From NCBI RefSeq assembly GCF_006345805.1, contig NW_021832380.1:62001-126000 (forward strand): 64,000 nucleotides of DNA, in the 5' to 3' direction. Shown in pieces: positions 1,385-41,464 of the stretch. Origin of the DNA: Octopus sinensis. Lineage: Eukaryota. Numbering within the stretch: position 1 is the stretch's first letter; the number at the start of each line of letters is the position of its first letter. The notes under the pieces were generated by a model that had not been told where the DNA came from, ran no database searches, and saw only the letters and a program-made list of their open reading frames with translations. Made by a program: the position numbers and the translations under genes.

Positions 1385-2200
1385 TCAGATGCTTATTATT
1401 TCTGCTTTTGTTTGGGATTTGCTCACTAGTCCAAACCCTCGTAATTTATACTTTATATAAGCCCAGATGTGCTCTATTGGATTCAAGTCAGGGCTTTGAG
1501 GAGGACAATCAAGAGTTTTAATATTTTTTTGCGTGTCCATTTGCAAACAAGCGGTATGCTTGGGATCGTTATTATGCATTAAGATGAAAGTATTTAGTCC
1601 CATTTCCGAAGCTCTTTGAAATAGATTTTGGGCCAAATGTTACTTATAAAATGCATTATTCATTTTATCGTCGATGAAAACAATTCTTCCAACGCCTTTA
1701 GACGAAATACAGCCCCATAACATTATGTTCCCACCACCGTGTTTGACAGTAGGGAGATTTTATCTGAATTATAATGTTCTAATGGATAATATTAATGTCC
1801 GTCACTCTGATATAAGTTAAATTTGTACTCATCGGAAAAAACTACTGTTTCAAGTTCCTCGTTTGACATACTCAAACATTTATCCGAGAATGATTTTCTT
1901 TTTTCAATGTTTACCCGTATTAAAAGTGGTTTTTAACTGGTGTTTTAGTAATAAGACCGGCAGATCGTAACGTATTTGATATACTTGATGTTGATATTGT
2001 GATACGATGATCGTATTCAATTTTATCCTTAATTTGTCTCAACGTAATTAAGTGATCGATATCATGATATTTAAAGCTATCGTGCTTTATGTCTTTTGAT
2101 AATTTTAATGGCCTTCCAGAACCTATTCTTCTTGACAAAGATTCATTATTTTGTATTTTTGAATGTATTTTTTGCACCGTCGATTTCGAAATCTTGTATT
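1385..2200 (-). mobile_element. Tc1/mariner (DD34E-type) transposase remnant
   Basis: ORF pieces carry GSGRPLKL (HTH region), HNNDPKHT and PPQSPDLNPIEHIW, typical of Tc1 transposases. Frameshifted, and no TIRs identified. Confidence 0.8.
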
Positions 2201-2224
2201 TTAGGGCAATAAGTCTTTAAGACA

Positions 2225-2372
2225 GTCCGTTCCTTAAATCTTTGGAGAGAAGAATCGCCAAAAGGAGAAACGACCCGAGAGAGTCCTTTTGGCTTCTTCA
2301 ACGCCTCTCCATTGCCGTAATCCGCGGCAACTGCTTTGCAATCCGTGAGGCTGGGAGGGCGCCCTAACCTGC
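2225..2372 (+). mobile_element. 3' end fragment of CRE-clade (RLE) non-LTR retrotransposon
   Basis: Translates as SFLKSLERRIAKRRNDPRESFWLLQRLSIAVIRGNCFAI, matching the CRE-type C-terminal FQRISVAIQRGN motif. Confidence 0.6.
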
Positions 2373-2732
2373 GTAGTCTTAAACAATCCTTCTCCCTTTT
2401 CTAACTGTCTTTTAATAAATTCGACAAGTGCTTAAGCAATGATAAAAAATTTAATATTTTAAGGAAATATTTAGGTGGTCACTTTATTAGTAGAAATAGA
2501 TTTTCAAAAAATCATCAAGACAAATTTTACAATGCGAATACTCAATTTTTTGAGTTAAATGTGTTTATCAATAGAAATAACAGATTGTTAGCTATGAATT
2601 TTTTTAAAAATGATTAGAACCATGATAAATTGCATTATTTCTAAGTGATCACTTTTTTTCTGCATTAAGTGTATGTTCAACTCATTTAAGACTGTTATAA
2701 AATATGCAAAAATTAAAAAATAAGAAAAAATA

Positions 2733-5700
2733 TCAGACCACGTCCTTTAGAATGAATTTAGGGACAATATTCATAGCCGTCATCTCCTGACATAGCAATT
2801 TGAAGGCATAAGGCATCTGTACTCGAGCCATTTCTGACCCATCCCGACAATTCTGACACCTCGCAGTGACAAAGAAGGAATACCAATTGGGCATGCCCAT
2901 CACCCCACACTTGCCACAAATATCCACAACAAAGTTATCACTGGACGTAACCAACCGCTCATGGATAAGCTGACTGGCCCCATATGCAATGAGACAGTCC
3001 CTCTCCATCTCCCCTATCCGCAGTCCTCCCTGCCTATTCCTCCCCTCCGTCGGCTGTCTCGTCAGATTCACCACCGGCCCAGTCGACCGGGCGTGGATCT
3101 TGTCCCCCACCATGTGCTTCAACTTCTGATAGTACACCACTCCGTTATAGATCTGGCACTGCAGAGGATTCCTACACTCCCCCAACACGAATACCCTTCC
3201 ATCCCCGTGTACATTATGTCCTCCCCGATGTAGTTGAATCCGTGCTCTTCCAATATCTTCTGAGTCAACTCGCGTTTGTCTCCCTGGAAGACTGCCATGC
3301 CTCACCAACACAACCCGTCGAGTCCACAAATTGACCTCCCACCGCCGCGGCCTTCCCGGTGATGATTTCCAACATCTTCCCCACCGTCATCCTCGAGGGG
3401 AATCCGTGAGGGTTCATAATCTACCATAACCACCCCTCCTTACAATGTCGGGAATCACTCCCTACCATCTCACACCACCAACTACCGATTCCGTGAAGGG
3501 CAGATCTTCTGGGGAGACAATGTTGCCAATAACACTACAAATGACAGCACAGGACACCCCTTCTGTCCATGCCGACTACTGAACTTGTCCCCTATTTCCG
3601 GGATTCGGTTTATTCTGTACTTTACTTTCAATATCGTCTTATCTCGCTCATTACACGTCAACATGACTCGGTCTACATGACAATCGTCCACTCCCCGGTA
3701 ACTGCCCTTCATTATTTGGACAAACCTGAGGGTGATCACATTCCTCACTGACTCGTCCTGCATTCTCATCCTCTTCACAAACAGACTGTCACCCGTTTTC
3801 ACCAACGCCCCTACACTTACACTAATTTAACACCAATCTCCGCAATTCCGTCATTTCCTATGGCCTTGAACCGATCCTTCACCCGATTGTCGGTCTCGGA
3901 GATGACTGGAGGTGGCTGACCCTCTTCCACTGTGGAGAAATCAAAATATGCCACTTCCTTCCTGTAAACCGTGGACCTCCCCAATCCCCGGTCGATGGAT
4001 GCTTTATTGAAGACCAACGCATCCTCCAAGTCGTACCCCGAAAAGCTCATTATGGCCACCAGAGCATTCTGTCCTCCCGGAAGTCGATCAAAACAAGCCA
4101 TGTCCATCACTTTGGTGGAAACAAGGGGTCGTTGAGGGTAGTTCAAATTATAAATGACTGAATCAAATCGTTTATAGTGGTTTTCAGCCATCAGCCCTAC
4201 GAATAGAAGGACATTCCAACCCTGTGCTTGTTTGCCCATAGCACACTGATAGGTCAGTCGAGGTGCCTGGTTGTGATTGGAGAAAGGCACTACACTCACA
4301 CACACACCCAGTAGAGCAAAATTAGCAATATCCATGTGAGTAGAATGCCTATATTACTCCCCACACACAACTCGTTAATGCTCTCCCTGTCGGAAGCCAC
4401 CACTGCGTCCTCCATTTCGTTGGCGTCCAAAAACTCGAGGACTCCATGTCTCCACAGCCAATCCAGCGGCCTACCACTGACTGGGACTACTCACGTGGCT
4501 TTGTCGGCCAGTTCTTCCTCCAGTTGAGGCGTCAACAGACATTGCTGGTTGTCCACCCGGAAGAACGGGCTACCAATACACGGAAACACCCACCGAATGA
4601 GTCTCCCACCATCACAGGACACCACCACAAACCGACGGGTCTCATCCAAGTTAATATTCACGTAGAAATGAATAATCCCACGCCTTCTCAACTCGCGGAT
4701 ATTACTGACCAGTTGACTGGGGTTGGCCGATATCCCCACTACCCTCCCTGTCCGTAGTCACCCTCCAATACCGTTCAGAAACACAATATAATTGCAGGGG
4801 GCTGTCAGTTGGTCACCCGACACCAAATCCAACGGCAAAGTCCCGAAATTCCGCAGAGTGTCCGCGATCACGGATTCCGTGCATTCCCCCGACACCTCCG
4901 CCAACAGGGACAGGTTCTTGACGAGACCACAACTCTACCACACTCAAACTGACACTAACCTCCCCCTCGGGTGTGTCACATGGACAAATCAAATAAAACT
5001 GAGTTCCGTGAATTGACCGTGGTCCCACCGATTTCCGTGTTTTCTCAAACTATGGAATTGGGTAGGGAAGGGGACTTGTGAGACAATTCTGGTGATGTGG
5101 GTTATCGTGGCCAAATAACAGCACCGACTGAGTACTTGGGTCACTCCAGATCTGTCCATTTTGAATCTCTTGATGGCCCAATTGCCCTGAATAGTGAGGG
5201 GGAGTACAGTGAGGAGTGCCAATTCAAGTCTATCGGTGATGTATCGTGGACTGATGTAAGTGTACAAGTCATATCCCGCATGTTTGCACATCCGTTCGTG
5301 CACTCTTTTCAAGTCAGAGTTGAAAGTGAGGAATAAATCCTCGAATAAAAGTGAGAGAAGAGAGGAAGCCAATTCCATTCGTTTATTGCCGTAGTGTTCT
5401 CGACTGTCCATTGTCTCTGGTCTCAGCTTGGCCGAGATGTATCGGTAGATCATGACACAGAGGAATATCCCCTTTTCTCGCAAATCCCTCCCGTCGCACT
5501 ACTCAATGACCACCACACATACTTCTATGTTCGGGAGGAGCACATCCGCCAGAACTCGGCCTAGCAAGTCCTTCTTGCTCATTTCTCCAATTCCTTGTTC
5601 ATGTCCACTGATCCTCACTTTGTCCTCCAAGTACTCCAAACACTATATTTATTAAATAATATAATTAATTAATTATTAATTAATTTAAATATTGAAATAG

Positions 5701-6813
5701 TAGAATAATACAGAAGTGGTGATGTGGACACATGCCACCTCGTGACAGTGATAGAGGCTGGGAGTCAACATTGTATAATTGTCTGGGGTGTGACCAATGT
5801 AGTCGAAAATCTCCTGATCAGTCTCAATGCCCAGTGCCTTAATGAGGACATAGGCAGGCACCAACTAGGACTAATTCAATCACTTACATCATTAAATGAA
5901 TTGTGCTTTATATAGAACACATCCCTCTTCATTAATAATGTCGTCTTGCTCTTCCTTTGAGAGGTAGAACTGAGGACTGAGGCCGTCAACAATTCTCCCT
6001 CTCCCTCCACAATAATCCGATTTCTGTTCATTTGTTCTTGTATCATGAGGACACGTTCGGCCCCCTTTATGACAAAGTACCCCCCGGGGTCGAGGGGACA
6101 TTCTCCCACTCTGTGCAGTTGGTAGTCCCTTATTAGCTTGTTCACTGTCAGGTTGCAGTTTTTGGAATGAATCATTATTGGAAGTCTACAATATATATTA
6201 TATCAATAAATATATATTTTATTTCTATTGTTTATTAAATAAATTTTTATCAATAAAATATATTTAAAATTTGTATCGATGTGTGCTTACCTTCCAATTA
6301 GAACATTCTCCCTTCTGACATAATTATCAGGCTCCCCTCTCTGGTAGACAATGTCGACGTATATGTCGGCTGCGTATGTGAGATCCCTTAGGCGGCACTA
6401 CAATATGCCACTGAGGTACCTCGTTGGGGAACACTGCCCTGGTCGTCCCCACTCCCTCGCAGATGTCTGGCGTGCCCACCCGGATATTGTGATATCTGCT
6501 GGGTTATGTGGAAGTACTGAAGGAATAGTCGGCCGTCTGAAGTGAGGTAATGATCTTTATGGGCGTCCACGATTTCTTGGAGCTAAAATAGAGGGAAAAA
6601 TGTACATTTCTCGAAACGAAGGAGTTAAATGAATTGATCTGCATTTTTATTAATCCACCCTTGGCCAGGTAAAGAGGAATGAACCGTTCTCTCCCCTATT
6701 TAATATTTTTGATAGTTTTACCTTAAAGTTTCGTAGGTTTGTTTTGTGTGTGAAGAATATCTCGCTTGTGTCTGGACGTCTACGAATAAATCATTACCCA
6801 CAACATACTGCAT
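2733..6813 (-). CDS. POLR3B: DNA-directed RNA polymerase III second-largest subunit (RPC2), many tiny introns
   Basis: Motifs [138 protein letters not shown]. Frame breaks are resolved by 22-29 nt GT-AG introns (e.g. 2860-2883, 4197-4220). The start at 6813 is inferred. Confidence 0.92.
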
Positions 6814-7069
6814 TGGAACTCACGATTTTTATTATTAAATTTAAATTTGTTATTTTATTTTTTTTATAAATTTATTCACTGTACAAAATTAACTAAGATA
6901 TATAATTAATTGACTTTTATTGTCCATAGTTCTTAATATATTATTTATAGAGTCGGGAATCCCCAGTGAATCCGATTTTTCTCCCGGTGAATATTAGGAA
7001 GGGAAACCCTGTATAAAAGCTTCAGAAAAGATCAGGGACTTGACACAAAGTCTTCAGAAGATTGAGCTT

Positions 7070-7478
7070 GGCTACACTTTTTTGGTGCTGGTGAGTTTTT
7101 CAGTGTTGGGTCTAATTAAATCTCAATATCAACTTTTATGGCGTCTTTCCGTCACTTCCCTAAAGTTTCAGTTTTGCAACCATATTCATTCAGTGTACTA
7201 ACATTTTTTTAAGAGTGTGCTAGTTGGTTAACTATAGTCTAACTTTCGTGATTAATGACAACATTTCTGGCAAATTTCGAGGACGGAGTAATACAGATCC
7301 CCCGCCTTTTTCTGTTTATCATCACTATCCTACCCTTATTTTAGATCATTCCATTTTGAAATATTTAAGCTGAATGCTTGCTTTAAGCACTCTATTTTGT
7401 TGAGGTAGTCTTATTAGCATACCAGCTTTGCAGCAACTTTACATTATTGGAATTGCCGTGGGTAGACTTCTCCCCAAC
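7070..7478 (-). pseudogene. Degenerate 18S rRNA gene fragment
   Basis: The reverse complement contains decayed universal 18S segments in the correct order: TATGGTTGCAAAACTGAAACTTTAGGGAAGTGACGGAA (cf. TATGGTTGCAAAGCTGAAACTTAAAGGAATTGACGGAA), AAAACTCACCAG, ATTTGCCAGAAATGTTGTCATTAATC, AAATAGAGTGCTTAAAGCA, AAAGTTGCTGCA. Many deletions lie between them. Confidence 0.75.
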
Positions 7479-7489
7479 TGAAGATCACA

Positions 7490-8245
7490 AAACTCGTTTA
7501 AGAATAGTTTCTTCAGATATTTGTAGAGATCTCCTTCAAAGTAGGTACTTTCAATCTTGAGAGTTTATTCGAAGGATTGGAAAGTTTGTTTGAGTTCAAA
7601 AACATTTTTACGAAAATATTATTTTTGGACCCTGAAATGATTGTAGTGTTTTACTTTACAAACATACTTTATCATTAAAATGACATTATCAGAAAAGTCA
7701 TTCGAAATTGTGACGTATTTTCATTACAAATATATCTATTTTTTAATTTTTAATGTACGTTGCTGATATGAATATTTTTATCTCTTCTACAAATCAAAAG
7801 TTTCAACTAAATCTTGTAGATCTAAACAAGTTTTTATAAATAGATTTCAACGTTCATTGGCAGGTTTTTAAACAATTTATTCAGATTTGCATTTATCAGA
7901 GCACTTTTTAACAAAGGAATATATAACAACTTAAGACCACTTGTTTACTTATGGACCTTGCAAATTTTTACAATCTGGTAATGGTCCAGAATTGTGTTTC
8001 TTTGAAAATTCAAATTTGATATAAATTTGATTAATAATTCTCACAAGCCGCTTTCAAGTGCCCGCAGCTGCTTGTTCAAAAGATTCAAGTATAAACGAGT
8101 TCCTTTCTATACCTCATTGTAATGTTCTATGACAAATACATTAATTAAAATTTAATAGAATTTAAAATTTTATCCCAAATCGAACGCCCTAAATTAAAAG
8201 TTCATCAGCTCATTTTGACGATATCGCCCACGTTGAGAACCACTA
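7490..8245 (+). mobile_element. Probable hAT-type DNA transposon remnant ending in a right TIR
   Basis: GTTGAGAACCACTA at 8232-8245 is the reverse complement of a typical hAT terminus (TAGTGGTTCTCAAC). The upstream sequence is only weakly transposase-like and the left boundary is unknown. Confidence 0.35.
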
Positions 8246-8678
8246 GGCTACATCGCTGCAACTTTTTGCCGAGGAATCCCCTACTTTTCAATGGTTGACG
8301 CAACATCGGAGGAAAAACAGAAATTGTTGTGGCATTTGTAAAAAATCTAATTTGAGCTACTCACCACCCCTTAACAATTTTTGAAAGTATGATTGCTCTT
8401 AAACTGAAGAAATTTGAAGAAAACGAGTTTGACAAAATTTATCGTTTACTTCAATCCATGTAGTATAAATTTACCTTTTCCCATCGAGTAACTTCTGAAA
8501 AAATTCTCGATGTGATGCGCTTTGATAAAAAATCTAAAGGACAAATCCCTCGCTTTGTCATTTTAGATGGGATAGGAAAAGTTGAATCTTTTTTAAAGAT
8601 GCTTATTGCAAAAAAATCAATGAAACACTTTTAATGGAAACTCTTGGTTAGATGGTTGCAGAATTTTACCATGAATAG
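8246..8678 (+). pseudogene. aroB: Bacterial-type 3-dehydroquinate synthase fragment, internally deleted and frameshifted
   Basis: GYIAATFCRGIP..SMVDA/IGGKTEIVVAFVKNLI*ATHHPLTIF (cf. AATxxRGI, MVDASIGGKT, KNLIGxxHxP) is fused in frame to ESMIALKLKKFEENEFDKIYRLLQSM*YKFTFSHRVTSEKILDVMRFDKKSKGQIPRFVILDGIGKVESF/KDAYCKKINETLLMETLG*MVAEFYHE* (cf. MxxDKK..RFVxLxxIGK). No introns. Confidence 0.8.
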
Positions 8679-8953
8679 AGGAAATAAATGGGCCCTTCGC
8701 ATCAAAAGAGCTGTCTTTAAGGCTTTTTAGAGATTCCACATCTATATTTCATACACTTTGTGCCATCCTCTTTGGGGTGATGGGCAAAGGAAAAACCACT
8801 GTTCGCAAGTAACTACAGTCTCATGATGCTATTGCTATGATAGAAGCGACTAAGAATTTTAGAGCGCTCATCACCATGTTACTCGATCAAGTCAAAATTG
8901 AAGGCGTTGGAGGTCAGTTTCATACCGTGGTTGATGTTGTCTACTCAGTAAAC
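8671..8953 (+). pseudogene. aroA: Bacterial-type EPSP synthase N-terminal fragment; ATG overlaps the aroB stop
   Basis: MNRGNKWALRIK/KSCL*GFLEIP/SIFHTLCAILFGVMGKGKTTVRK*LQSHDAIAMIEATKNFRALITMLLDQVKIEGVGGQFHTVVDVVYSVN matches the AroA N-terminus pattern (G.l.IPxSKSHTxRAIL..GK..ixnxLxSxDxxAMxxA..lGa.I..IeGv). ATG 8671-8673 lies 8 nt inside the aroB frame, which ends at TAG 8676-8678. Confidence 0.8.
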
Positions 8954-9971
8954 CCCCTAATAAACATTACTAATTGTTAGGTATCTAAAATATCTTTGGA
9001 AAAAAGACGTCTAAACAATCCTAGCCATTTACAGCAAAGAGGTTTTAAAAAGAGATTCCCAAAAAGATTTCAAAGCTTTTTGATTGCATGCTCTCTCAAA
9101 ACTTTGTGCTCAAATCAAAACATCGCACTGCTTAGATTGCATTCAGTTGTCACCTCAGATCGCTACCAGTTTTCTCCATTGCAAACCCTCTCTATTCTTG
9201 ATGAACTCTTATAAATCCAAGATTAAGATTTGTTTAGGAAAACATTGTTTCTGCTAAAGAGGAGCCTTTTTTGTGAGTGGTTTCTCAACCGTTGTTTGGA
9301 CGTGCGGTTATGCTTTTGGCCTTTCTTCTAATTCGACGCCTTGGGTAGAAATAAATTTATGAACAGGCGGTTGAATGGAAATTTGAGAAGCTGGTTGTCT
9401 ACGGATTTCAGAAGATTCTGCTATCGAAAAGATCGTCAAGTTCATTTTTATCTTCCGTGAACTCTGCAAAAAAACTTGATGGGGGAAGAGGAAGAGTTTT
9501 TTCTTTAACGTTCTCATCACCTTCTTCTTACCCTTTAGAAGGACGTTCCTGTCTCTTTTCAGCTTTATTAGACTCTTCAACTTTTAAGACATTCATAAAT
9601 TTCTTGTGAGCAACTTCTTTATCTGGCGTCCCGTTTCGTCTCTATTTTGTGCTGCGTCTGCAATGATTTCTAAACATTCCCCTTAATTTTTCAAATATTA
9701 TGCATAACACTTTCAATTTCATCTTTTTCAATAGCCATTTTGAGGTCAGCTGGGTTTATTTTTTGAGGGGATTGTTGAGGATATTGTTTGCGGTTAATGC
9801 GTTCAAGGAGAATTTTGTTATTAGTTCCTTTATTTCCGATGGTTTTTTTTATAGAAAATAAGTTTAGGATAGGGCAGTAGTGGAGTGCTAATGTGTTTTT
9901 GATGTTCCTGTCAGGGGTTGGTGTTGTCGTGAGATTGTGACTTGAGTGCTTTTTGATCATACTCGCGGAGG

Positions 9972-10067
9972 CAATATTATACCACTTCAAAATCTTAAAT
10001 ACCAAAATGGCGAGAAATATCGTGTCAATATTATACCACTTCAAAAATCCTAATTACCAAAATGGTC
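9972..10067. repeat. Two imperfect tandem copies of a ~54-bp unit abutting the Ginger element
   Basis: CAATATTATACCACTTCAAAA(A)TC.TAA.TACCAAAATGG begins at 9972 and again at 10026. Confidence 0.8.
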
Positions 10068-10077
10068 ATATATATTA

Positions 10078-11863
10078 TGTCGCGACCCACGCTGGCGACC
10101 ATCCCACGCTGGCGACCATCAGTTTGACAGGTTATGACCTTCAGTTTGACAGGTGATTAGTTTGATATTTAAACCGGAAAAAATTCATTTTAAGAAATGG
10201 TTTAGCGTCATTTTAGAAAAAAATTATGGTTTCTCTCAAAAGATGTTAGCTCATATAGTCTTAATTCTTAGGCTACGTGAAAAACGACAGTGAATACCAA
10301 AATCTGAGAAGTGTACTACTTCAACAACCAGTGATGACTACATCCAAGTCAGAAAAATACAAACTTATGAAAAAGCGACTCAATTTATCATTATTAATGA
10401 TCGGTATATTTGCGACTCCTAACTCATAGTCTTTATCTAAAGGACGAGAATAACCAAAAACACAAATTGGTCATTTGTCTGGACAATGAAATGGAGATGA
10501 GGACACTAGCATTCGCCATTCACCAAGAATCCCACTGGGGAATACGAAAGCTTCAGAAAAAGTGCAGTGAATTCTATTTCACTGTAAAACGTCCAATCAT
10601 CGAACAAATTATAAAAGACTGCGAAATTTGTAAATTTGCCCTACCATTGAAAGTATTTTAAAAAAATATACCTAGGTGTCGGATTCTAATTACCATGTAA
10701 CTGCAGGAAAACCCAATGAAAGATTCCAGGCGGATCTTATTGATGTAAGAAGATATAAAGAGTTTAATGATGGATGTAATTGGATACTTACAATTATTGA
10801 CATCCACAGCAAATTTGTTGTCTGCAAATCTTTAAAAAATAAAACTGCTTCTGGTAAGACTTAAAATTTATTTGAAGAAGTGGTGAATAAATTCCAAAAT
10901 TTGTTTTATCAAATTGGATATTGTCAGATCTTGCAAACGGACAACGGGTTGGAATTCAAAAACCAACTTATGGCTCAACTATGCGAGTAAAACAAAATTA
11001 AGCATATTTATGGAAGGCCAAACCATCCTCAGTCACAAGTTTGTTAGTTTATATAACTTAGGGTGTGATTGAGAGGTTTAACCAAACCTTAACTCGTGCT
11101 CTGGCCAAAATGATGGAAATAGAGGGAACTAAAAATTGGAAACAATTTTTAGACAAAGTAACTTTTTCTTATAATACGACACACCACTCGGCGATCAATG
11201 AGACCCCCTTCAAAAAGTTTAGGGGTATTTCTGGAATTAACACTGTGATTCATGAAATACCAGGTTATAATCTTATTTATAATTTAGATGAAAATAATGA
11301 GGCATCGTTTGTCGAAGATGAACTTAGTGGTAAATTTACGATGTATTTATTTTAGAAACGAATAACAAAATTTTTAATTTCACTCCTCCAGACATGAATT
11401 CATCTTATTTTAAAAGAATGAATACAAAGATGGGAGTACACAGGTCAAAATATGATTTTGAAATAGGGAATGAGGTATAAATAAATAATAACAGTTTAGG
11501 TTCGAATCTTGAAAGATTGTGGGACAAATCCGTCATTGAAGCTACACAGATTTGAATCCCCATATGAAGAAAAGGGAACAGTGAAAGAAGTAATGTCAAA
11601 TAACAGACTACTAGTGAGTTACCATTCCTAACATTAAGATCGAATTCCAAAATGAAGCTAGGATAGTTACTATGAACAGAGTTAAAAAGTGTTAATTTTT
11701 TAAGTGTTAACATGTCGTTAGTTTTTTTAATTAATACAAAAATACATCGATTAAAATATATCACCTGTCAAACTGATGGTCGCAATTAATGTCAAAAATA
11801 CATCACTGAAGGTCATAACCTGTCAAATTGAAGGTCGGATGGTCGCCAGCGTGGGTCGCGACA
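10078..11863 (+). mobile_element. Ginger-type (Gypsy-integrase-like) DNA transposon with intron-containing transposase
   Basis: TIRs TGTCGCGACCCACGCTGGCGACCATC..GACAGG at both ends (TGT...ACA) with a 5-bp TSD TATTA (10073-10077, 11864-11868). Integrase motifs: H2C2 (HQESHWG..CEIC), FQADLID, LQTDNGLEF, SQGVIERFNQTL. Introns at 10404-10429, 10653-10675, 10854-10877 and 11039-11061. One in-frame TAA at about 10988. Confidence 0.82.
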
Positions 11864-12037
11864 TATTATGTGACATGGGCGACTGGATACACATGGGCAA
11901 CCGGTTACATTTTCGACCTTTGACCAACGATTTTATTTTATTGAAAATTTCAAAGGATCTCACTTATGGGTTTCACGTTTTAAGGAAGAGTATAAAATAA
12001 AAACACTCATGATTTCTGGAGAAGAACGATTAGTGTT

Positions 12038-12405: not shown

Positions 12406-13347
12406 ATGAATTCAAAATCAATTCTTATTTTAAAATGCATTCTAGGACTGGCAATGTTTACAATACTTATCATGAATTTCATCTCATACCAGAAAACGGT
12501 ATTGTTATACAAAAGTATTCAAAAGATTAACATCACTGAATCCCTCGAAGGGGAAAGCATGGTTTTAGTCACTGCCTACTACGTCATTGACCCCTTCAAG
12601 AAAGAAAAAGACGTTCTACGACTCTCATCTGATTATTTTCGGTGGATGGAAAAATTTAAATTTATATCGAATCATGTGGTGTTTTACTCAGACAGCATGC
12701 AAGTATTGAATAAAATGAAAACAATAAGAATGGGAAATCGAACATCAATTATCTTTTTGAATAGATCAGAATTAGTCGGATTTATGAACATTGACAGAAT
12801 CAAACACATTTTCACTCTCCCTGGATATGGCCAACACTTTCTCGAAACGGGCAACCCCGACTACTCGGCCATAATGCACTCCAAACATGACTTGCTCCGC
12901 AGAACCATTCACAAATATCAGAACATGTCCTCCTACTTTGTTTGGGTTGATGTGGGACTCTTCCGACACACCACTTTTGTGGGCAATCACGAACTGAGGG
13001 CTACACAGTACATGGATCAGACACGCGTCACGATGACTCAGATCTTTGGGTTCCACGATATTTCAATGGAGGAAATCACCAAGAATGCCCAAGTATGGGT
13101 TGGCGGGGGCATGTTTGGAGGACACTTCAAAACCTTACTCAAATTCTGCGACGTTTATAGCGAGTTTTTTGAAATTCTTTTGTCCATGAATTTGATTGCC
13201 ACTGACGAGCAAGCACTGTACTCGCTGTATTCCACTCAGGGACGGATTTTAAAGAACGACAGTGTCCCAATACAAGTCTATCAATGTGGGTATTTTGGAC
13301 TCTATTCGCTATTTACAGACGTGACCACCAATTTTGAATGTCCTTGA
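12406..13347 (+). CDS. HtrL/YibB (WlaTC/HtrL)-like putative glycosyltransferase, type II membrane protein, intronless, 313 aa
   Basis: Single long ORF with an N-terminal hydrophobic anchor (ILILKCILGLAMFTILIMNFI) and motifs VLVTAYY, YFRWM, DYSAIMHSK, YFVWVDVG.FR, VGGGMFGG and TDEQALY that I associate with the HtrL family. AATAAA follows just downstream. Confidence 0.68.
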   Translation: MNSKSILILKCILGLAMFTILIMNFISYQKTVLLYKSIQKINITESLEGESMVLVTAYYVIDPFKKEKDVLRLSSDYFRWMEKFKFISNHVVFYSDSMQVLNKMKTIRMGNRTSIIFLNRSELVGFMNIDRIKHIFTLPGYGQHFLETGNPDYSAIMHSKHDLLRRTIHKYQNMSSYFVWVDVGLFRHTTFVGNHELRATQYMDQTRVTMTQIFGFHDISMEEITKNAQVWVGGGMFGGHFKTLLKFCDVYSEFFEILLSMNLIATDEQALYSLYSTQGRILKNDSVPIQVYQCGYFGLYSLFTDVTTNFECP

Positions 13348-17390: not shown

Positions 17391-17427
17391 CATTAAATAA
17401 ATGTCTTAAATAAACGCATTTTTTTAG

Positions 17428-18560
17428 TTAATAAAAGTTGTCCATATTCATTTTACTTGTTAAATAGCTTAACATTAAACATATTTCTTTATCGGACATG
17501 ATTCCGATACATTCGTCATCCTCATTAGCAACATCCATCGTTATTTCGTCACATTCAATGTCACTAAACATATTTTCCCCCAATTCCTCGTGGAATCCAG
17601 CCTTACAGAAACAGTTGTAAATTGTTGTTATTTTGACTTCCTTCCAAGCCATTTTGAGTATGTGTAGCCATCTAAGAAAGTGATAGAATTCACAACGAAT
17701 TTGAGACAGCGCGTCATTTGAATCAATTACGGAAATCACTCTGTAAAAATGCAAATCTGTAGTTGTGCTGTGGACCTTTTATAATCCCCATATCATATGG
17801 CTGAATGCATGTGAATATGTTTGGTGGATAGAATACAATCTAACATTTGATGAATTTTCTCCAACATCTTTTGAATGCGCAGCACAATTTTCAAAGACTA
17901 TATTTCTTTTTTGTATTTTCACTTTCAGGTCAAAACATGACAACCAGTTTCTAAATAACTGTAAGTGTTTTTATTCCTTTGAAGCACCTAAAATTCTTTC
18001 TTTTCCCAATGACATAAATGGGTCTTTGTCCGAACCCGTCATGTTGCAGGATACTATCACAATTATTCTATCCTTCATTTTTTACTCCCAATCGGTATTT
18101 CATTTTTAAAGTCCGGTCGGTGAACCTCTGAATATGAGTCCTGTTTCATCATATTTATAAATGTTTTCCGGTGTACGACCTTTGAAAAGATCTTTAAATG
18201 TCCATTGGCACTATTATTCAGCAGCAATTAGATCGGAATCATTTTTCTCCCCATAGATATGTTGATTCTTTCCAGCTCTGAAGCCAACCTCCAGTAGGAT
18301 AAAAGAGTTATCCATTTGCATAGTTTTAGAAAAGCTAATAGCTTTGTGGATTTTTATGGGATCATTTATTGATACATTTTTTTATCCTGGTTTGAGCAAA
18401 CCAGATGGACAATAAAGTTACTACGTTCTTCTCTTTGCCAACCCGTCTTCTTTTGCAACTGATACAATTAGATTCAACCGATAGCATAATTTCTTCGCTA
18501 TTCTTCAAAATCCGTGAAACTTGACACTGATATCAGTTGAATCTTCCAGATAGAACTACC
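17428..18560 (-). mobile_element. pogo/Tigger transposase remnant
   Basis: ENIYKYDETGL, KFKCPRCFKG, YLIKNDIKVVPFC..(DLSPLD-like), LKMAWKEVKITTIYNCFCKAGF. Multiple stops and frameshifts. Confidence 0.72.
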
Positions 18561-19439: not shown

Positions 19440-20520
19440 TTTATTATACATCTTTATTTGAATTAATGAGGGGCGCAGAAATCAAGCCCCAGCCGAAGAG
19501 CAACCCCGATACGCAGTGTTTCGTTGTCTAATAGGGAACCCGTCGATGACGTTGGGTAAGCGTCGAACCAGGATCCACTATGCTCGTGTGCTGCAGCAAG
19601 CAAGGACGCCTGGCGGTGTTGGTCCAAGGCCGGTTTGAGCGTAGAGAACGAGTGTGCTGCCCAGATCTCGTCCCAATCCCTCTGTGAGGTTACAGAATTC
19701 CATGTCCTTCTTCGCCAGATGGGCCCTTAGGCCAGATGGGCTTAGAGGGCAGTCAAGGAATGTAGCTTCTGACATGTTGATAGTCTGAATGCCTGGGATG
19801 AGATCGGTTATGGACTTTTTCGAGTCGAGAAAATTTGCCAGCGGGTAGTTGACATTCATGAGCTCACATTTTTCTTCATTTACTTCAAGCCCAAGGTGTT
19901 CGAGGGCAGGGATTAGGTGTGAGAGGTCGCTGGATATATCCTCGATAGATCCACAAACCGAGGCATCATCCAAGTGCGAAGACGATTTCGTTACCAAAGA
20001 TAGGCGGGGACATACGACCTCGAGGCCAATTTAGCAGTCAGGCAGCGGAAGTAATTTCCAACTGCTATGGGACGGATTCCGCCATCCTTCTTCCGGAATG
20101 CAAGTAGATGTGCTGAGAAGAGCATGTTCCTCGCATAGTAGGGGATATCCAAGTTCAGTATCTTACCGACTAGAGCGGTTATAGCCGATATCAGAGAGTT
20201 GCCTGCCTCACCAGTTGAGGGAGAGGTGAGGTCCTTGATGTGGCCCGGGCGAAGGCCATCAAGTCCGCCGCAGCTGCTTTTGCCAAAAGATTGAATTGTG
20301 AACTTGATTTCATCTTCTGATGGATTAAGCGTGCAAGACACAGATGGGGGAGTAAGAAGCCGCATATCAGGAGGAGGATTTGGGTGTTTTGATCTCAGGT
20401 GGGCAAGGACAGTTGGTTGATTGAGACTGAGAGTTTAACACTGTGTCTCGTTTGAGACTGTGCGAACGACAGCCCGGACGTCACCCTCGGCTAGTTTGGC
20501 ACAAACACGGTCATTCAGGG
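19440..20520 (-). mobile_element. CRE-clade non-LTR retrotransposon RT fragment
   Basis: CAKLAEGDVRAVV, SFGKSSCGGLDGLRPGHIKDL, LLAFRKKDGGIRPIAVGNYFRCLTAK, YL..CEDDASVCG, LGLEVNEEKCE are hallmark CRE-like RT segments, with internal deletions. Confidence 0.82.
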
Positions 20521-22040: not shown

Positions 22041-23479
22041 ATAACCAGCATTCCTGCACACACAAATTTATTACAAATTTACACAGATTGTGTCTTTTAA
22101 AGATTCAACAGATAATAACTTATCAGAAATTGTAAAATCATATTTAATCCGAGTCTTCCTGCCCACTTGTTAATTTCACAATGTTTTTCTTGTAGTTATC
22201 TCTTTAGAGCGTTCTTTTACTCAAATCATCGATCTCAATCTGTTGACAGTCGTCTTTGTCAATCCACTTAACCCGCATACTTTCTAGGATCCTCGTTATT
22301 AGAGTGTTTTGAACTTACACTTTGATTGAGTCATCTATTTTGAGAGTATTTTGGTGATGTTTGTAAAAAGTTGTTTACATTACCATTTCAAGTTTGCACC
22401 AAAGGTATTAAATTCACTTTCGCATTGTAAATCACTGCTAAATCACTGGTCGTATTTATGCATCTCTTCGACTTCAATTTATTTCAATTATTTTTGTAAG
22501 TGATCCCAGTCTCAATTAAGTTTATAGTTACGGGCGTATAACAACAAGCCCTGCTGCAAGATGAGAACGAAATGTTAACATCTCGCTTGGATCAGCCACA
22601 TTAGATCAAGACAAAGAGAGAACATGTTATTAAGAAACTAATTAATCCAAACAAAGAAGTGTGTCTCTGCTCCATCTATTTTTCTTTTCTGGTTCAGCTA
22701 CGGGCGTATCAAATAAAAAGTTGCACTATTAAACACGACATAACATTCCCTCACTTCGAGGAGGATGATTCCTCAACTTAAAAATAATATTTTAGATACT
22801 TAAACCACCGGGAAGACTCCGTAAGGTTCACATTCGTATCCATTAGATAATTAAAAAGTATTGAATGCGGCGACTTTCTTTTGATCAAAAAACCCATCGA
22901 TAAATTCCTAAAATGTTCGATTTTATATTTCCCGTTAAAATATTCTACAATTGTAGGAATATGTTTTTTCTTTGACTTAACGACAATATTTCACAATAAA
23001 GCATCTTTTCCCCCGCTTTCTCTACTAAACAAATATCCATTCACTCTTGTGTGTCATTGACACGAATCTTGTTTTTAGTTGGAATATGATAAATATACTC
23101 TTTTTTTATTAGATGTACCGACAATTTACTTGGATTCCACCTACGTTCTGATCAAGAATTTTAAACTCCGTTAATTCCACATCGATGATCACTATGTAAT
23201 AATTGTATAACGACAGGGCATGATCATTGATAGCTTAGACAGGTTATTGATTCAATTTGGTATTCAAAAAGTGACGATTCTATTGACGCACATAGCATAC
23301 TAAACAGTCGCTAATAGTTGGAAATATGATAATCCATAGTCTTTCTTTATTTGTCGACCTTTTGATTTTTTTCACCCCCCTAATATCTAATCCTAAGATG
23401 ATCCAACAATTTGGGCGGTTTCATTGCATTATTTGATAATGACATATTACACAGTAAACAACATGATTATTATTAAGCA

Positions 23480-23700
23480 CTTATTGTAGGGCCATAATTA
23501 TAGTCCCACCTGTGCAACAACCAAAACAATGTTAGTAACGAGTCTCCTCCATTTTCCTCGGTTAAGCGCTGTGAGCCGCAGCCTGTCCAAGTCATCACCA
23601 GTCTTGAAACAGGATTTGATTTAGCGAGGTCCGCATAGATTAACACGAGTCTCACAAAGGCATTGTAAAGCCTTGTCCGGAGTTGGATCTATTATCAAAA
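23480..23700 (-). mobile_element. RTE-like LINE 3' remnant
   Basis: RLYNAFVRLVLIY and LRLTALNRGKWRRL resemble RTE C-terminal motifs, followed by a TAA-rich tail. Confidence 0.4.
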
Positions 23701-23827: not shown

Positions 23828-25183
23828 ATGACAAGTATTGAATTAAACGATTTAACGAAAATAATGACATTCGAAGAACAAAACGGGGGCCAATTTCAAG
23901 GAAATTCTCTTTACTGGCCACTAGACGTAAGTACTGCTAACCACAGTCAGGAACACGACGTTCTCACATCATATGGGCCTATAAGAGTAGCCATTCAAGG
24001 AAACGTCCAAAATCCTGCAATTCTAACCTTCCACGACCTTGGAATGAATCGTAATCATTTCCTCTAACATCAGACATATCCTGCTTCCAGGGATTCTTCT
24101 CCCTCGCCGACGTCCAACCCCTCCTGGCCAGATTCTGTGTCTACCACGTGAATGCCCCTTCTCAACACCAGGGAGCAGCCACAGTCTACAAACAGTAATC
24201 CACTCATTTCACTTCAGAACCCCCTCCTTTTTAGACAGTTTTTTCAAGATTAGAGATGCATAGTGAGTCCTGGTGTAATTTGCAGTCACTATGAAGATTC
24301 CTCTCAATATCCCACTCTGGACGAGATTGCTGGCTCACTGTCCTCAGTTCTTGACTTTTTTGGGTTGGTTGTGGTGTTGTTCCAAGGATTCGTTCTTTTG
24401 TGGGGTTCGGAGTAGGAGCAGGAGCCAACATTCTCGCTCGTTTTGCAGTAGTTGATATTGTGAGTGTTTAGTTGTGTTGGCCTGGTTGTGTGGACGGACT
24501 GTACCTCATAAATTGTGACATCGGAGAGAGTTCCTGGAAAGAGTCGCTGGTCAGTCGAGTAAGGCGGTCCCTTCCTTCACTCTCAGTACAACCAGTGGTA
24601 TCTCAGGTCTGGACAGGCCAGTAAATTTGTGGTTGATTCGTACATGGACTATTGGTTTGGAGAGGTGATTTTTTTATAAGTTTTGCAGTACACGCAGAGG
24701 ACCAAGGAACCACTTGTGGCCTTCTACAGAGATCTTTTTTGTTCTTTTAAGTTCAAAAATTTAGCACTTTTTTCTGCTACTTTCAACGCGTTAATTCGGT
24801 GTGTTGATGTGTAGACGGAACTGCATTCAGTTGGAGAGATCGAGTGGGGGGGTTAATTTCAAATGTCCCACTGTGTTTGCTACTGGACAGTTCGCCCCAC
24901 TGTCTGAGCAAATTAGTCTGAATAGTGAGTTATTGGATCCTAAACTGTCTTCAGTGTTTGTGGTTGTGTTGCTTAGTGATCGGCAGATTTCCGACTGTGG
25001 GGGAATGCCATTGGAGGAACAGCCTTTGAAAGTATTGGAGTCTTTCACCTTGATGCTGCAAGGACTGGGATATGGTAAGTCAGGTCGGTTATTCTAGTCC
25101 CCTATTTGTCCAAGAAGCAGATGAGGAGTGAGAGTGTCATGTACTCGGGTGTTAGACTTACAGATCATTTCATTACTAACTAA
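23828..25183 (+). CDS. NDRG: NDRG family (alpha/beta-hydrolase fold) protein, multi-exon
   Basis: EHDVLTSYGPIRV..PAILTFHDLG.NH.SCF..F, CVYHVNAP, YPTLDEIA, FVGFGVGAGANILARFA, V.GLYLIN, LKCPT..ATG..APL, GGMPLEEQP.KV.ESF.L.LQGLGY. Tiny introns (e.g. GTAAGTACTGCTAACCACAGTCAG). Confidence 0.87.
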
Positions 25184-30131: not shown

Positions 30132-33100
30132 TTACAGGATGGTCACGGAGGGTGTCTGAACTGCATTGCCTTCCCTTCGTTGGGCGACCATATTGTTGAA
30201 TGCTTTAATTACTCGCAACTGCGACTGAATGCGCAATCCAGAACGAAGCCACAATATTTTGGCTGAGGGTATGTTTGCCGCGCTCTGACGGTCTTCCGTG
30301 ATCAACGTGATTTCGTCTTGTTGCATGCGTCCGACAGCAAGTCCTCTGGGCAGTTTTTTAGTAGGGATAAAAATCAGGAGTTGTTCCCAGAGTAGCCCCC
30401 CAATCCCGAATCCCAGACAAACCATCCAATCCACGAAGGGAAGTGGTCTCGTCTGGAAGAGAATCGAGCCAAACTGGACAATAATAACATGGACGACAAA
30501 TGTGGACCCCCAAATTGCCAGAAACATTGGATTTTTAAGAATGTTCTCAAACACGTTTCTTTCTCCATGAATTTTGCGACAATTGACTTGATTGAACAAA
30601 GTCATAATCACAAACACGTTGAAGATGGCAGTGTAGTCTTTGTAGGGGGATGGAGACGACAAAAAGTAGTTCTCTAAAAGTAAGGATTGACATCACTACC
30701 GAGGAAGAGGAACATAAAAATGACGATCAACTGGTAGACTGCATGTCCTACAATCGACTTCATCATATTCCGAGAGATCAGAGCTTTCGTCCGTCCGTAC
30801 GGGCGTCGTTTAAGCAATTTCTCCGTCGGTTTCTCGGTGGCCAGAGCAAGTGAGGCGAACGTGTCCATAATTAAATTAACCCACAGCATTTGAATGGCTG
30901 AGAGAGGACTATCCTACCAAGTCAGGAAATTAGACATGACCAGAGACACGGCAGATCCAATGAAGGCTACAACCACAGCGACCAGGTTGACTGTGAGTTG
31001 GAAGGTGAGGAACTTGGCGATGCTGTCATACACATTCCGTCCCCACATTACTGCCTTGACAATGCTTGTGAAGTTGTCGTCCGTCAGAATGATGTCGGAT
31101 GCTTGTTTAGCCACATCTGTGCCGGCCATTCCCTGCCCTGAGTCACTCCCAGAATACCATGGCGAACCCCACGTCTGCCTTTTTGAGAGCTGGGGCGTCG
31201 TTGGTGCCGTCGCCAGTCACTGCAACCACTTGCCGGTTGTTGGTGAGTTCGCTGTTGATTATTCCGTTAATAAGAGTGTATTTGTCCGTGGGGGAAGACC
31301 GGGCCAGCACTCTCAGTTGGGGCCAGATGGAGTCCAATAATTCTTGCTTGATCTGCGATGTCATGGGAGAAGACTGCCTTGTTGTTAGAGTCACGTATTC
31401 TGCGGTTGAACTCGCTGCTTTCGATGACCAGAGAATCGTCTCCCGAGATGATTATTCCACATTTGAGGGCAATAGATTTTGCAGTGTTCAAATTGTCCCC
31501 AGTTATCATTCTGACGACAATTCCAGCCTGTTTGACCTTTTCGATGGCCCCGGGGACCTCGTCCCTGATAGGGTCCTCAATTCCTGTAATGGCCAAAAAA
31601 GTCATTCCCCGCAACACCGAATCCTCGTCCTCCCAATTGGGCTCTCCTAAAAATGTAAAAGCCAACTCTACGACCTCGCTCTGTCGGAAAGTCCTTAAAT
31701 GCAAGACAGAGAGTGCGGAGGCCTGACGTGGACATGACGGCGATCACTGTGCGGTATATATTGTCTCTGCCTGTATTGGAGAGCGACCGGATGCCTCCAC
31801 CCTCCCCAAGGACATGGGAACATCTACTGTCTTAAAACTCCACTACCGAAGGAGAATAACTTCCGTGGCTCCTTTGCAGTACAGTCTAAACCCTTGGGGA
31901 GTCCTGACGACAGTAGACATGTACTTTCTGGTGGAATTGAAGGTGTAGAGCTTGTGGAAGGAGATGGTCGGGGTCTGTTCTCTGATTTCTGCGTAATCCA
32001 TGCCCAAAGTTTGTAACAGTCCGAGGAGGGCACATTCCGTCTTATTCCCCATCTGCTTAGGTCTCCCAGATGGGTCCTCCACTAGAACGGACGTATAGGC
32101 AGTGTTGACGGATATGGACTCAGAGAGGAGTTGGAGTGTGGTGGGAGGAATACTTTCGGCAGAAGGGACATATTTGAAATACTTATCTGCCATATTGACA
32201 GTGAGAATAAAACCAGCAATGAAGAGTTCGACGACAGTCATTCGATTAGTGGTGAGAGTCCCTGTTTTGTCCGAACAGATGGTTGTGGCACTCCCCATCG
32301 TTTCACAGGCGTTCAAATGTCGCACCAAGTTGTTGTCGTAAATCATTTTCTTGACAGAGTAAGCCAACGAGATTGTCACGGCCAAAGGCAGTCCCTCTGG
32401 AAGGGCCACCACAAGGACAGTTATCCCGGTTATGATATGTCCAAGCAGTACGTGGATGTGTTCTCCACTGTCCCATGACTTTTTCTCGGTCGCAAAAGTG
32501 TTGACCACAAACCTGAGTACGAGTGTCAGAGTAGTGAGAATAGCCATTGAGAGACCTTCATTGTGCAAATATGCAATACCGAAAATTCCGATTTTCAGTG
32601 TCAGTTTGGATAGTTTGCTTTGGAGGACAGACTGTTCAGTCGAAGTGTCCAAATGGTCCTCCTCCACTGGGAATAGTCACGTTAAACTATACAAAATTGC
32701 TCGGAAATTCCTTCCTGTTCTTCCTTGTCGACTGGAAAATAAATATACAAAAAAACCGATATTCTTAACTTTTTTCTTCTTTTTGTTATTTCCAACTGCT
32801 CCCAGGAGAGTGGCAATGATGCCCGACTGGGAATGGACCCCCACGGCGAGCACAATCATATTCCCACTCCCTTCCATCACTGTCGTTCCTGCAGAGATTA
32901 TGTGTTCCCTCGACCGGAATAGACGAGGGGATTATCCGTTTTATTTTTTTTGACAATATCAGATTCACCCGTAAGAGAACTCTCGTCCACTCGGAGGTCG
33001 TTTGAGTGGAGGATAAGTCCGTCCGTGGGGATAAGGTCCCCATATTTAAGGTGGCAGATATCCCCGACTACAATGTCCGACACATTCACGTTGATCAGTC

Positions 33101-33628
33101 TTCCTCCCCGAGTAATCGAAAAATGTTTGTCCTTTGTTATTTGTCCGTACAGTCCGATAAATTGCTTTTCTTTTTGATAGTCGTTGAGAGCAGTGACGAG
33201 GACCACGACGACCACAGCGAACATAATCCCCACTGTCTCAATCCACTGGTATTCGCTGTGTGGATCTGCAAGTAATGCGAGGACAGCACCTTTGCTGGGC
33301 ACGAAGGAGAGTGCAAAGGACAGTACAGCCGCTATAATAAGAATAATCAGGATTTTGTCATTGGCAGCTTCGAGGACGAGTTTGAGGAAGGTTTTTGGAG
33401 GTTTTGGAGGGATAGTGTTTGATCCGAACTGTTGTCGTCTTAGTTCGATTAAATTTGGATCGAGTCCTCAAAAGTCAAGTAAATCAGTTAACCTGAGGAT
33501 GGTTTTGAGTCGAGGAGGGTACAGATGTTGTCGGTCGATTGAAAGTGATCGGCGATGAATTGGGTGGCCTCCCGTCCTCTGCACTTGAAGAGTTGTCCCA
33601 GTCGAGCAATGTTGAGATTTTGCGACAT
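30132..33628 (-). CDS. ATP2B: Plasma-membrane Ca2+-transporting P-type ATPase (PMCA), multi-exon
   Basis: [17 protein letters not shown], phosphorylation site [68 protein letters not shown] and a calmodulin-binding domain [20 protein letters not shown]. Confidence 0.96.
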
Positions 33629-34859: not shown

Positions 34860-35446
34860 TATGCCACGAAAGTGCTGGAATTTTATGATTCCTTGGTTCG
34901 TAGATCTGCAGAGAAAATTCTCAATGTGCATTTCGACAATATTGCCTGGTGTCAGGCTAAACTTCCTGTGAGTCACGGAGGTCTGGGCCTCCGTTCCAGT
35001 ATTGATTTGGCTCTTCCTGCCTTTCTTTCTTCTGCGTCTGGACATATTTCATTGTCCAAAAGATTCTGGAAAAAACTACTGAATCATCGTTGGACTCTGA
35101 TATTGATCCGGCCCTCGCTCTTTGGAAACACAATTTCTCTGAAGTCCCTTCCGATGTCTTTTCTCAGCGAGATTGGGACAAAATTCTTTGCCGTCGATCT
35201 TCAACTGACTTAGAACCACTCCTCGACCAACACAGACTGGCTTGTTTCCGTTCCGCCTGTCAGCCATACTCAGACTCCTGGCTGAATGTACTCCCTTCTC
35301 CGCTTTTGGATACTGTCCTCGATAGGGATTCACTCCGTTTGGGTATCTGTAATCGCCTTGGACTCCCTGTCTGTAGACCTCACCCCTGTCGTTGAGGGGA
35401 TAAAGTTGACGCCTTTGGGCTACATTTTTTGTCTTGTCGTGAACGC
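34860..35446 (+). mobile_element. CRE-clade retrotransposon fragment (thumb to zinc finger)
   Basis: WCQAKLPVSHGGLGLRSS..LALPAFLSS, SDSWLNVLPS, LRLGI..RLG.PVC.PH.C, DAFGLHFLSC. Confidence 0.78.
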
Positions 35447-39971: not shown

Positions 39972-41464
39972 TCAGTGATTAGAACATTGCGGAAGACTAT
40001 TCCGAGACACAAAGGCAACCCCCGCCAAGTTCATTCTGCAAACAGAACAGCGGAAACATTCAGTGTGCCACGTCTGTCCGCCCAACGCCTCCACTTGGAT
40101 GTACCTATCCCCCGGGTCAATCCTGAGGCGGCAGTCTGCACACGACTTGGCGTAGATATACTCCCAATCTGCTCTCGTCTCCAAAAAGAGTACCCTTCGT
40201 GCAGAATATTGAGTTTTCATAAAAGTGGAATCTCCCATCGGAAATTGTCTCATTGCAGTGACAGCAACGGAAGCACTGAGTGTGCCACCGCTTACCCAGG
40301 GCAGCTATAGACTCCTGGCATGAATCCCCACACTACCTCGACAATTCCTTCCCCACACTGTTCACAGCGAGGGGCGTAGTACTGCGCGTAGTGTTCCCGA
40401 CAGTACAATTTGTCTTGATGCACTGAGAATGCCGTGTCCACCAGGGATACTCCACAATTGGAGACCGCACACGTAAAGTGATCACGACAGTAAGTCTTCT
40501 CCAATGCAGTCACGTATGGTCCTCTAACTGTTAGCCATTCTGGGGTACCGAATCAGATTCTTGCAAACATCGCAAATGGGTGTTTTCGATGGCTTCTTTC
40601 CTTCCTCTTTGCTTAAACGTATCGCTGAAATTTGATCACACACATTCTGTGCCTCTGTCTTCTTGCTTGAGTCACCAGAAGAGGATTTTGCCGAACCGGA
40701 ACATAAATTAGCTGACCCAAAAGCAGGATTTGATGACCCAAATGACGGTTTTGATGACCCAGAAGAAGGCTTGGGTGACACATAAGGAACATTTGAATGC
40801 TCAGAGGAATCCTTGGGTGAAACATAAGGAACATAGGAAGTCTTGGGTGACACATAAGGAGCATTTGAAGGCCCAGAAGAAGTCTTGGGTGACACATAAG
40901 GAGCATTTGAAGGACCAGAAGAAGTCTTGGGTGACACATAAGGAGCATTTGAAGGACCAGAAGAAAGTTTGGGTGACACATAAGGAGTATTTGAAGGCCC
41001 AGAGGAAGTCTTGGGTGACCCAGAAAGTGTTTTGGGTGACTGAAAAAAGACGGGCGTTTTTGAGGTTGAAGGAATACGACGTTCAGTCTTTTAGCCATAT
41101 AATGAATATCTCACCGTTTCATGGTATTTGGTAGATTCTGGTGTTTTCGGGATGAATGTAGTGCCGGAAACCACAGGGGACTCTCGTGCTCTGAGGAACT
41201 TAGAACACTCAACAACCTGCTTATCTTTAAAGTTAAAGTCTCCTGTGATGAAGAAATAATGTTTCTTGCCTCGTCATGAGTCATATTTTGTGTATCGATA
41301 TTGTTGATGCTTTCGATGATGTCACCAGTGACAAGTCCACACACATTTGCGACTCCACTCGAAACGACGTTGATGACACTAATAGGATAGCCCTGTTCGT
41401 GTCCCCCGTGCATTCGAAAACCCCAAGGAATTGATTTATTAGTTCTGGTTAGTTCAATTATCAT
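39972..41464 (-). CDS. PDZ-LIM domain protein (ZASP/Enigma-like, N-terminal PDZ plus three C-terminal LIM domains)
   Basis: PWGFRMHGG PDZ loop. LIM motifs CDVCKNLI, HFTCAVSNCG..LYCREHYAQYYAPRCEQC, CADCRLRI..WHTECFRCSVC. A Ser/Pro repeat linker separates them. Confidence 0.86.
40700..41040. repeat. Coding minisatellite, 42-bp (and 21-bp) units within the PDZ-LIM linker
   Basis: TTGGGTGA starts at 40771, 40813, 40843, 40885, 40927, 40969, 41011 and 41032 (spacings 42, 30, 42, 42, 42, 42, 21). Encodes PSNAPYVSPKTSSG on the minus strand. Confidence 0.92.

Follow-up and report, generated by a model that had tools for sequence, protein, structure and literature searches.

A probable relic of Simkania-like chlamydial aroB-aroA DNA in an animal, most likely dicyemid, genome

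How does a piece of a bacterial shikimate operon come to lie between the genes of an animal, and does it still do anything there? This question is raised by a short segment of the 64-kb stretch of DNA analysed here, which is called the window in the following. The initial annotation had described the segment as a decayed aroB-aroA fragment of bacterial origin, taken up horizontally into a genome of animal type. Its identity, its donor, its condition and its surroundings were examined in turn.

The fragment comprises 710 bases of the plus strand (8244-8953) and is a broken piece of bacterial aroB and aroA. The boundaries given at first, 8246 and 8953, lie within 2 nt of these coordinates, and the AroB and AroA peptides quoted with them were all recovered from a three-frame translation of 8100-9100, in frames +2, +1 and 0 of 8246-8953. 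The assignment to AroB and EPSP synthase was confirmed by Pfam, protein search and blastn in agreement. With the stitched translation, Pfam detected DHQ_synthase (PF01761) at E 7.2e-7 (29.3 bits, cut-off 24.2), DHQS_C (PF24621) weakly (E 0.014) and EPSP_synthase (PF00275) at E 1.7e-4, the 20.9 bits of the latter being slightly below the cut-off of 22.8. Membership of the aroA part in this last family was seen from its best protein match (P0008; 71% identity, E 2e-19), with gene DNA ~89% identical. The best AroB match (P0001; 86% identity, E 6e-47) is encoded by the same contig. The next AroB matches reached 61-64%, one of them named 'Simkania sp.' by NCBI, and remoter ones were labelled 'Chlamydiales bacterium'.

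The contig that carries both best matches as adjacent genes is a JGI metagenome contig of 53 kb, Ga0180434_10000586 (L001). The metagenome was obtained from hypersaline sediment of the Salton Sea, California (PMC7449369, supplement). DNA identity between the fragment and the aroB-aroA junction of this contig amounted to 641/707 = 90.7%, counted over all aligned columns. Two blastn matches cover the fragment: window 8378-8948 corresponds to L001 10827-11400 (89.4%, 748 bits) and window 8244-8382 to L001 10344-10504 (78%).

DHQ synthase and EPSP synthase are neighbours in the eukaryotic AROM protein, too, so that a vertically inherited or eukaryote-derived remnant of AROM, or of a sugar-phosphate cyclase of the EEVS type, has to be weighed against a bacterial origin. 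The initial annotation had itself set these homologues as the counter-case. In the search of 5.8 billion proteins with the translated fragment, 17 of 17 matches were stand-alone bacterial AroB or AroA proteins, the named ones belonging to Simkania sp. and Chlamydiales. Furthermore, the DNA is ~90% identical to a bacterial operon including an out-of-frame overlap of 20 nt between the two genes, which is impossible in the fused reading frame of AROM. A neighbour-joining tree of AroB, restricted to the 144 residues kept by the window, placed the fragment within a bacterial clade. A eukaryotic source is, hence, extremely improbable.

In this tree the AroB of the window is sister to that of the Salton Sea contig, on a long branch, and the pair adjoins the Simkania sp. 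clade. Over 144 frame-corrected residues the two AroB sequences share 88% identity. On the Salton Sea contig, aroB and aroA belong to a set of genes that all point in one direction and encode DAHP synthase, chorismate mutase, prephenate dehydratase, AroB, AroA, AroK and AroC (aroG-pheA-aroB-aroA-aroK-aroC). Among 185,579 species genomes one related locus was found, on the 'Simkania sp.' MAG chromosome NZ_OZ244056.1 (L003). Its gene order is identical to that of the Salton Sea contig, and for 7/8 genes the protein identity is 76-86%. Within L003 1789-2040, just 84 residues match the 337-aa DAHP synthase of L001 (57% identity); the DAHP synthase gene of the Simkania sp. MAG operon may have been truncated or replaced. 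No donor relative closer than the lone Salton Sea contig emerged from the scans of genomes and metagenomes.

A donor among the environmental Chlamydiae had been suggested from the C-terminal tail of AroB. The comparison narrows this to a Simkania-like organism, and the tail, SFKDAYCTEIDE.LL.E.LGWMVAEFY (SFKDAYC..I.E.LL.E.LGWMVAEFY), is common to exactly the window and the Simkania-type group. Taken together, sequence comparison supports the view that the fragment is bacterial and that its putative donor was a Simkania-like member of the Chlamydiota. The remaining operon genes aroG, pheA, aroK and aroC are absent from the window, and blastn and tblastx detected nothing else of the 21-kb donor-type sequence, or of its Simkania counterpart, in the 64 kb.

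The condition of the fragment was determined by base-level piecewise alignment to L001, from which all lesions and their coordinates were taken. The first part of aroB (8244-8377, plus strand; L001 10344-10504 by blastn, alignment and Pfam DHQ_synthase) corresponds to AroB residues 115-168 of 384. It carries an in-frame deletion of 21 bp after 8290, by which IPTSLLA was lost, a frameshifting deletion of 1 bp after 8303 and a nonsense mutation GGA>TGA at 8353-8355. The initial annotation had placed a central in-frame deletion of aroB at about 8382. This deletion is real; it measures 327 bp, has its junction at 8377/8382 with a breakpoint that is ambiguous inside a short T run, and removed AroB residues 169-277 (L001 10505-10831). 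The second part of aroB (8378-8705, plus strand; blastn and alignment) covers residues 278-384, with the tail of Simkania type at the C-terminus. Nonsense codons stand at 8461-8463, 8649-8651 and 8672-8674, and indels were located at 8589-8590 (+2 bp), after 8670 (-1 bp) and after 8696 (-2 bp). The ancestral aroB stop TAA has become CAA at 8703-8705.

The 5' part of aroA (8688-8953, plus strand; blastn, alignment and Pfam) encodes residues 1-90 of the 428 residues of EPSP synthase. Deletions of 1 bp follow 8705 and 8735, nonsense codons are found at 8718-8720 and 8810-8812, and homology stops at ~8953. Two details of the gene junction had to be corrected. The aroA start had been set at 8671; the homologous ATG is instead 8688-8690, within the 3' end of aroB. 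The TAG at 8676-8678, taken for the aroB stop, lies out of frame in the donor relative, where the bases read GTA GAG, and is in frame only after the frameshift. Thus, the description of two overlapping operon neighbours holds, with the aroA ATG 20 nt inside the 3' end of aroB in the Salton Sea relative, whereas the proposed overlap of 8 nt does not.

In total, six to seven small frameshifting indels were counted, or 8-10 indels overall including the deletions of 327 bp and 21 bp. Six nonsense codons interrupt the donor frame, four in aroB and two in aroA. A complete AroB frame is not present, as residues 1-114 and 169-277 are missing and several frameshifts accompany the four nonsense codons; the aroB part is a gene remnant rather than a gene. 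Likewise, no full-length two-domain AroA is encoded, residues 91-428 being missing and the remainder being broken by two nonsense codons and two frameshifts.

The substitutions bear on the history of the fragment as well. Between the window and L001, 65 substitutions were found in 702 aligned columns, distributed over codon positions 1/2/3 as 22/21/20 (chi-square p 0.94). In the same columns the two bacterial loci, L001 and L003, differ by 42/23/121 (p 2e-26). Leaving aside the six nonsense codons, the Nei-Gojobori omega between window and L001 was 0.59, versus 0.05 for L001 against L003. Polarised with L003, an outgroup saturated at third codon positions, 42 changes fell on the window branch (15/17/10) and 10 on the L001 branch (2/2/6), with 10 ambiguous. 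The window branch thus holds ~four fifths of the polarised changes, some of which could belong to the donor lineage, because the collections searched contain one close donor relative.

The changes are also directed. GC>AT changes numbered 47 versus 10 AT>GC changes, and sites with G and C changed at rates of 14-20%, compared with 3-4% for A and T, that is 4-5 times as often. A test for CpG-specific decay on the fragment gave no significant effect (p 0.23). At 36.5% GC, the fragment has moved from the 42% of the matching donor-type sequence towards the 34-35% of its flanks. Because codon positions are flat, omega is 0.59 compared with 0.05, six codons have turned into nonsense and changes run from GC to AT towards the composition of the flanks, the pattern appears to be that of neutral decay following integration and not of contamination. 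The decay inside a host genome that had been proposed for the fragment agrees with all of these measures. Splitting dS (0.136) and dN (0.081) between window and L001 into a bacterial part with omega 0.05 and a neutral part would suggest that the true donor and the Salton Sea organism had diverged by ~6% at synonymous sites. The same calculation would leave roughly 5-8% per site for neutral decay after integration.

A different reading is that the DNA was domesticated and is expressed, as a shikimate enzyme, as a new small protein or as an RNA. Other animals are known to carry functional genes from bacteria, and as the fragment lies upstream of a host gene, at a distance of ~1.5 kb, transcription or an action in cis is conceivable. 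Yet the longest open reading frame within the fragment has 47 aa, most of both enzymes is gone (AroB 1-114 and 169-277, AroA 91-428), nonsense codons are found in every segment, omega is near neutral and Rfam contained no family match for the fragment. We therefore regard domestication as very improbable. To judge from its sequence, the fragment would encode nothing and do nothing, and would be a fossil of contact between a chlamydia and a host.

The relic is placed in an AT-rich spacer of 5.6 kb that separates two divergently oriented genes. To its left, 6696-8243 is non-coding (34% GC) and lies upstream of the gene for RPC2, the second-largest subunit of RNA polymerase III, the mapped exons of which extend over 2739-6695 on the minus strand. 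To its right, 8954-10071 is likewise non-coding (35% GC). Neither flank showed homology to 21 kb of donor-type sequence in blastn and tblastx, and no repeat copies of the flanks were detected within the 64-kb window.

The right flank is followed by an element of 1.8 kb (10072-11869) with terminal inverted repeats of 74 nt that are 84% complementary. No coding region was recognised in it, and it probably represents a non-autonomous DNA transposon. Its terminal-repeat regions, 9972-10157 and 11750-11869, contain sub-repeats of 17 nt (CCCACGCTGGCGACCAT), 22 nt and 54-55 nt. A kinship between the left flank and this element, considered for a match of 17 nt, was rejected, the local alignment score being within the range of shuffled sequences.

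Beyond the element, an intact and intronless ORF of 313 aa (12406-13347, plus strand) belongs to HtrL_YibB (Pfam E 2.5e-7). This member of a 'bacterial' family stands 3.4 kb from the chlamydial fragment, among otherwise intron-rich genes. Its only database relatives are two proteins with 56% and 49% identity, both labelled Octopus sinensis, and it could be a functional gene acquired earlier from bacteria. Exact-product look-ups with five ORFs in and around the fragment (including two alternative starts of the HtrL ORF, the 47-aa ORF at the junction and a 72-aa ORF of the flank) found no independent contig. In the window sequence as given, the fragment is thus flanked by host DNA on both sides, with the intron-bearing RPC2 gene on the left and the transposable element and HtrL ORF on the right.

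Which host this is may be judged from the introns. In RPC2, GT-AG introns of 19-24 nt with support from homology were located at 6583-6605, 6498-6516, 6398-6419, 5865-5887, 3811-3833 and 3284-3305, and a further in-frame intron of 24 nt, GTTGGAATGTCCTTCTATTCGTAG, lies within 4168-4236. RPC2 had also been considered as an intronless, frameshifted retro-pseudogene. This was rejected, for each change of frame is an intron of the type just described. An intron of 24 nt was found, too, within 44382-44444 of the WNK gene (43473-45806, plus strand), where GTTGGTGGGGAAATGTCAGTTCAG separates KSVIG from TPEF. No less compact is the PMCA gene (30132-33302, minus strand), the short introns of which were predicted by a heuristic only. 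In lists of open reading frames such in-frame introns are read through, as a 10-residue insert within 4168-4236 and as WWGNVSSG within 44382-44444. The RPC2 protein reached at best 55-62% identity among the matches listed, spread equally over fungi, plants, nematodes and arthropods, a divergence that is expected for a very fast-evolving lineage.

Dicyemids are kidney parasites of octopuses and among the most reduced animals known. The only animals in which introns below 30 nt are known are myxobolid myxozoans and the dicyemid Dicyema japonicum (PMC13644364). The genome of D. japonicum, collected from Octopus sinensis, has 36.7% GC, 49% repeats and many LINE copies (PMC6736024). With 39% GC and several fragments of LINE reverse transcriptase, the window fits the published dicyemid genome in GC, repeat and LINE content. 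Fragments of LINE reverse transcriptase and endonuclease from one family (motif GGIRPIAVG) were noted at 19578-20365, 34872-35213, 50134-50691 and 52064-52573. A tandemly repeated coding-like unit at 40524-41134 (minus strand, for example SPKTSSGPSNAPYV; plus strand, for example WVTHKEHLKAQKKS) gives rise to long ORFs that overlap on the two strands, and a PDZ-like exon (41111-41485) adjoins this tandem-repeat region.

The window is further linked to contig VCDQ01001185.1 of assembly GCA_006345805.1, labelled Octopus sinensis, of which the range 108196-133576 (L004) was compared; it carries a relative of the HtrL ORF. Two repeats of ~160 bp are shared with 89% identity (L004 and window, 17391-17561 vs 23468-23633 and 23838-23994 vs 22540-22693). 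The type of LINE reverse transcriptase is common to L004 and the window, and the alanine aminotransferase gene of L004 (about 1800-4140, minus strand) is very compact. On L004, the annotated model LOC115229855 fuses a LINE reverse-transcriptase fragment (first 44 aa) with the single-exon HtrL ORF. A host identification as octopus, based on the HtrL matches and the shared repeats, was revised to dicyemid on account of the ultra-short introns. The simplest reading of L004 is that this part of the Octopus sinensis assembly is dicyemid-derived, and it may represent contamination of the host reference assembly by the parasite.

Because of the introns of 19-24 nt and the links to Octopus sinensis contigs, the window itself is likely to be dicyemid DNA, and a myxobolid is a less likely source. 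Hence, the original description as an animal-type genome was right in that the host is a eukaryotic animal; more specifically, the intron size makes it most likely a dicyemid.

The repeats bear on a further possibility, namely that the fragment was carried to its place by a mobile element or arrived second-hand from the cephalopod host or a protist, and occurs in many copies. The genome is rich in repeats, the element with terminal inverted repeats is only 1.1 kb downstream, and repeats of the window recur with 89% identity in a contig labelled Octopus sinensis. Against this, the fragment is a single copy in 64 kb, and its flanks are unrepeated in the window and not similar to the element beyond what shuffled sequences gave. 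Transport by an element or a second-hand origin is quite improbable.

An assembly artefact, in which a contaminating bacterial read or contig was mis-joined into a host scaffold, deserves separate consideration. The published dicyemid assembly was made from pooled parasites washed from octopus renal sacs, by merging Illumina and PacBio assemblies, and was passed through a contamination-removal pipeline (PMC6736024). An artefact would nevertheless require two chimeric junctions within 710 bp, and there is no bacterial sequence on either side. The fragment is, moreover, not the sequence of a living gene, given its stops, its frameshifts, the 327-bp deletion, the flat codon positions and the AT bias towards the GC content of the flanks. 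The 65 substitutions by far exceed the ~8 small indels, unlike the errors of raw long reads. We consider a mis-join improbable.

The explanation that best unites these observations is that the fragment is very probably a non-functional relic of lateral DNA transfer, which passed from a Simkania-like chlamydia into an animal host genome, most likely that of a dicyemid, presumably by capture at a chromosome break in the germ line. All Chlamydiota are obligate intracellular bacteria, and for this reason the donor would have lived inside a cell. This cell may have belonged to a dicyemid, to the kidney of the octopus or to a co-resident protist. The DNA taken up would have been a chromosomal stretch across the aroB-aroA junction of the chlamydia, joined by end-joining at a chromosome break into an intergenic nuclear region of a germ-line cell of the host. 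The inserted piece would then have become fixed and, being unselected, would have accumulated deletions, frameshifts, stops and GC-to-AT changes.

A wider history can be imagined, in which germ-line cells of dicyemids harboured, or still harbour, a Simkaniaceae endosymbiont that left more chlamydial insertions, possibly functional ones. Near kin of this endosymbiont would still be alive, the organism behind the Salton Sea contig being one of them. This history builds on one fragment, and we hold it to be unlikely. If it were true, the host range of the Chlamydiota would reach the Mesozoa, and a second system of animal and endosymbiont with ongoing nuclear DNA transfer would be at hand.

Several consequences follow for work on this genome. 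If its junctions are confirmed, the relic would be the footprint of a Simkania-like bacterium meeting a dicyemid. The Salton Sea contig could serve as a probe for the living donor in the renal sacs of octopuses. The fragment should stay in the assembly and not be stripped as contamination. Matches to the shikimate pathway in this genome are no evidence for a working pathway.

That animal chromosomes can hold dead insertions of bacterial DNA is well known, with Wolbachia as the source in most cases. To our knowledge, chlamydial donors of nuclear insertions in animals have rarely been documented. Full-text searches of the literature brought up neither chlamydial DNA from the genome of a dicyemid or cephalopod nor an occurrence of Simkaniaceae in cephalopods. 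The relic itself is unreported, and its kind, a relic of DNA transfer from a bacterium to an animal, is already established.

The closest parallel are the 'nuwts' of Wolbachia, nuclear insertions that Dunning Hotopp et al. reportedly described in 2007 from insects and filarial nematodes. In both cases chromosomal DNA of an obligate intracellular bacterium lies in a nuclear chromosome of the host, dead, scarred by frameshifts, stops and deletions, and drifting towards the composition of the latter. In contrast to the nuwts, which stem from an alphaproteobacterium, the insert appears to derive from a Simkaniaceae-like chlamydia and to lie in a dicyemid genome. The window contains only ~0.7 kb of such DNA, and a living symbiont of this host is not reported in the literature searched.

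With the Simkania-type operon of Ga0180434_10000586 and NZ_OZ244056.1 the fragment shares the order aroB then aroA, the aroA ATG within the 3' end of aroB and the AroB tail. Unlike these operons, the copy of the window is cut at both ends, internally deleted and riddled with stops, and the remaining operon genes are missing. Shikimate-pathway genes of microbial origin in an animal assembly have a precedent as well. Starcevic et al. are said to have found such genes in the genome of Nematostella vectensis in 2008, as intact genes with a proposed function, and the attribution of these genes was reportedly debated later. Unlike the genes of Nematostella, the fragment of the window is clearly dead and carries the signature of decay after integration.
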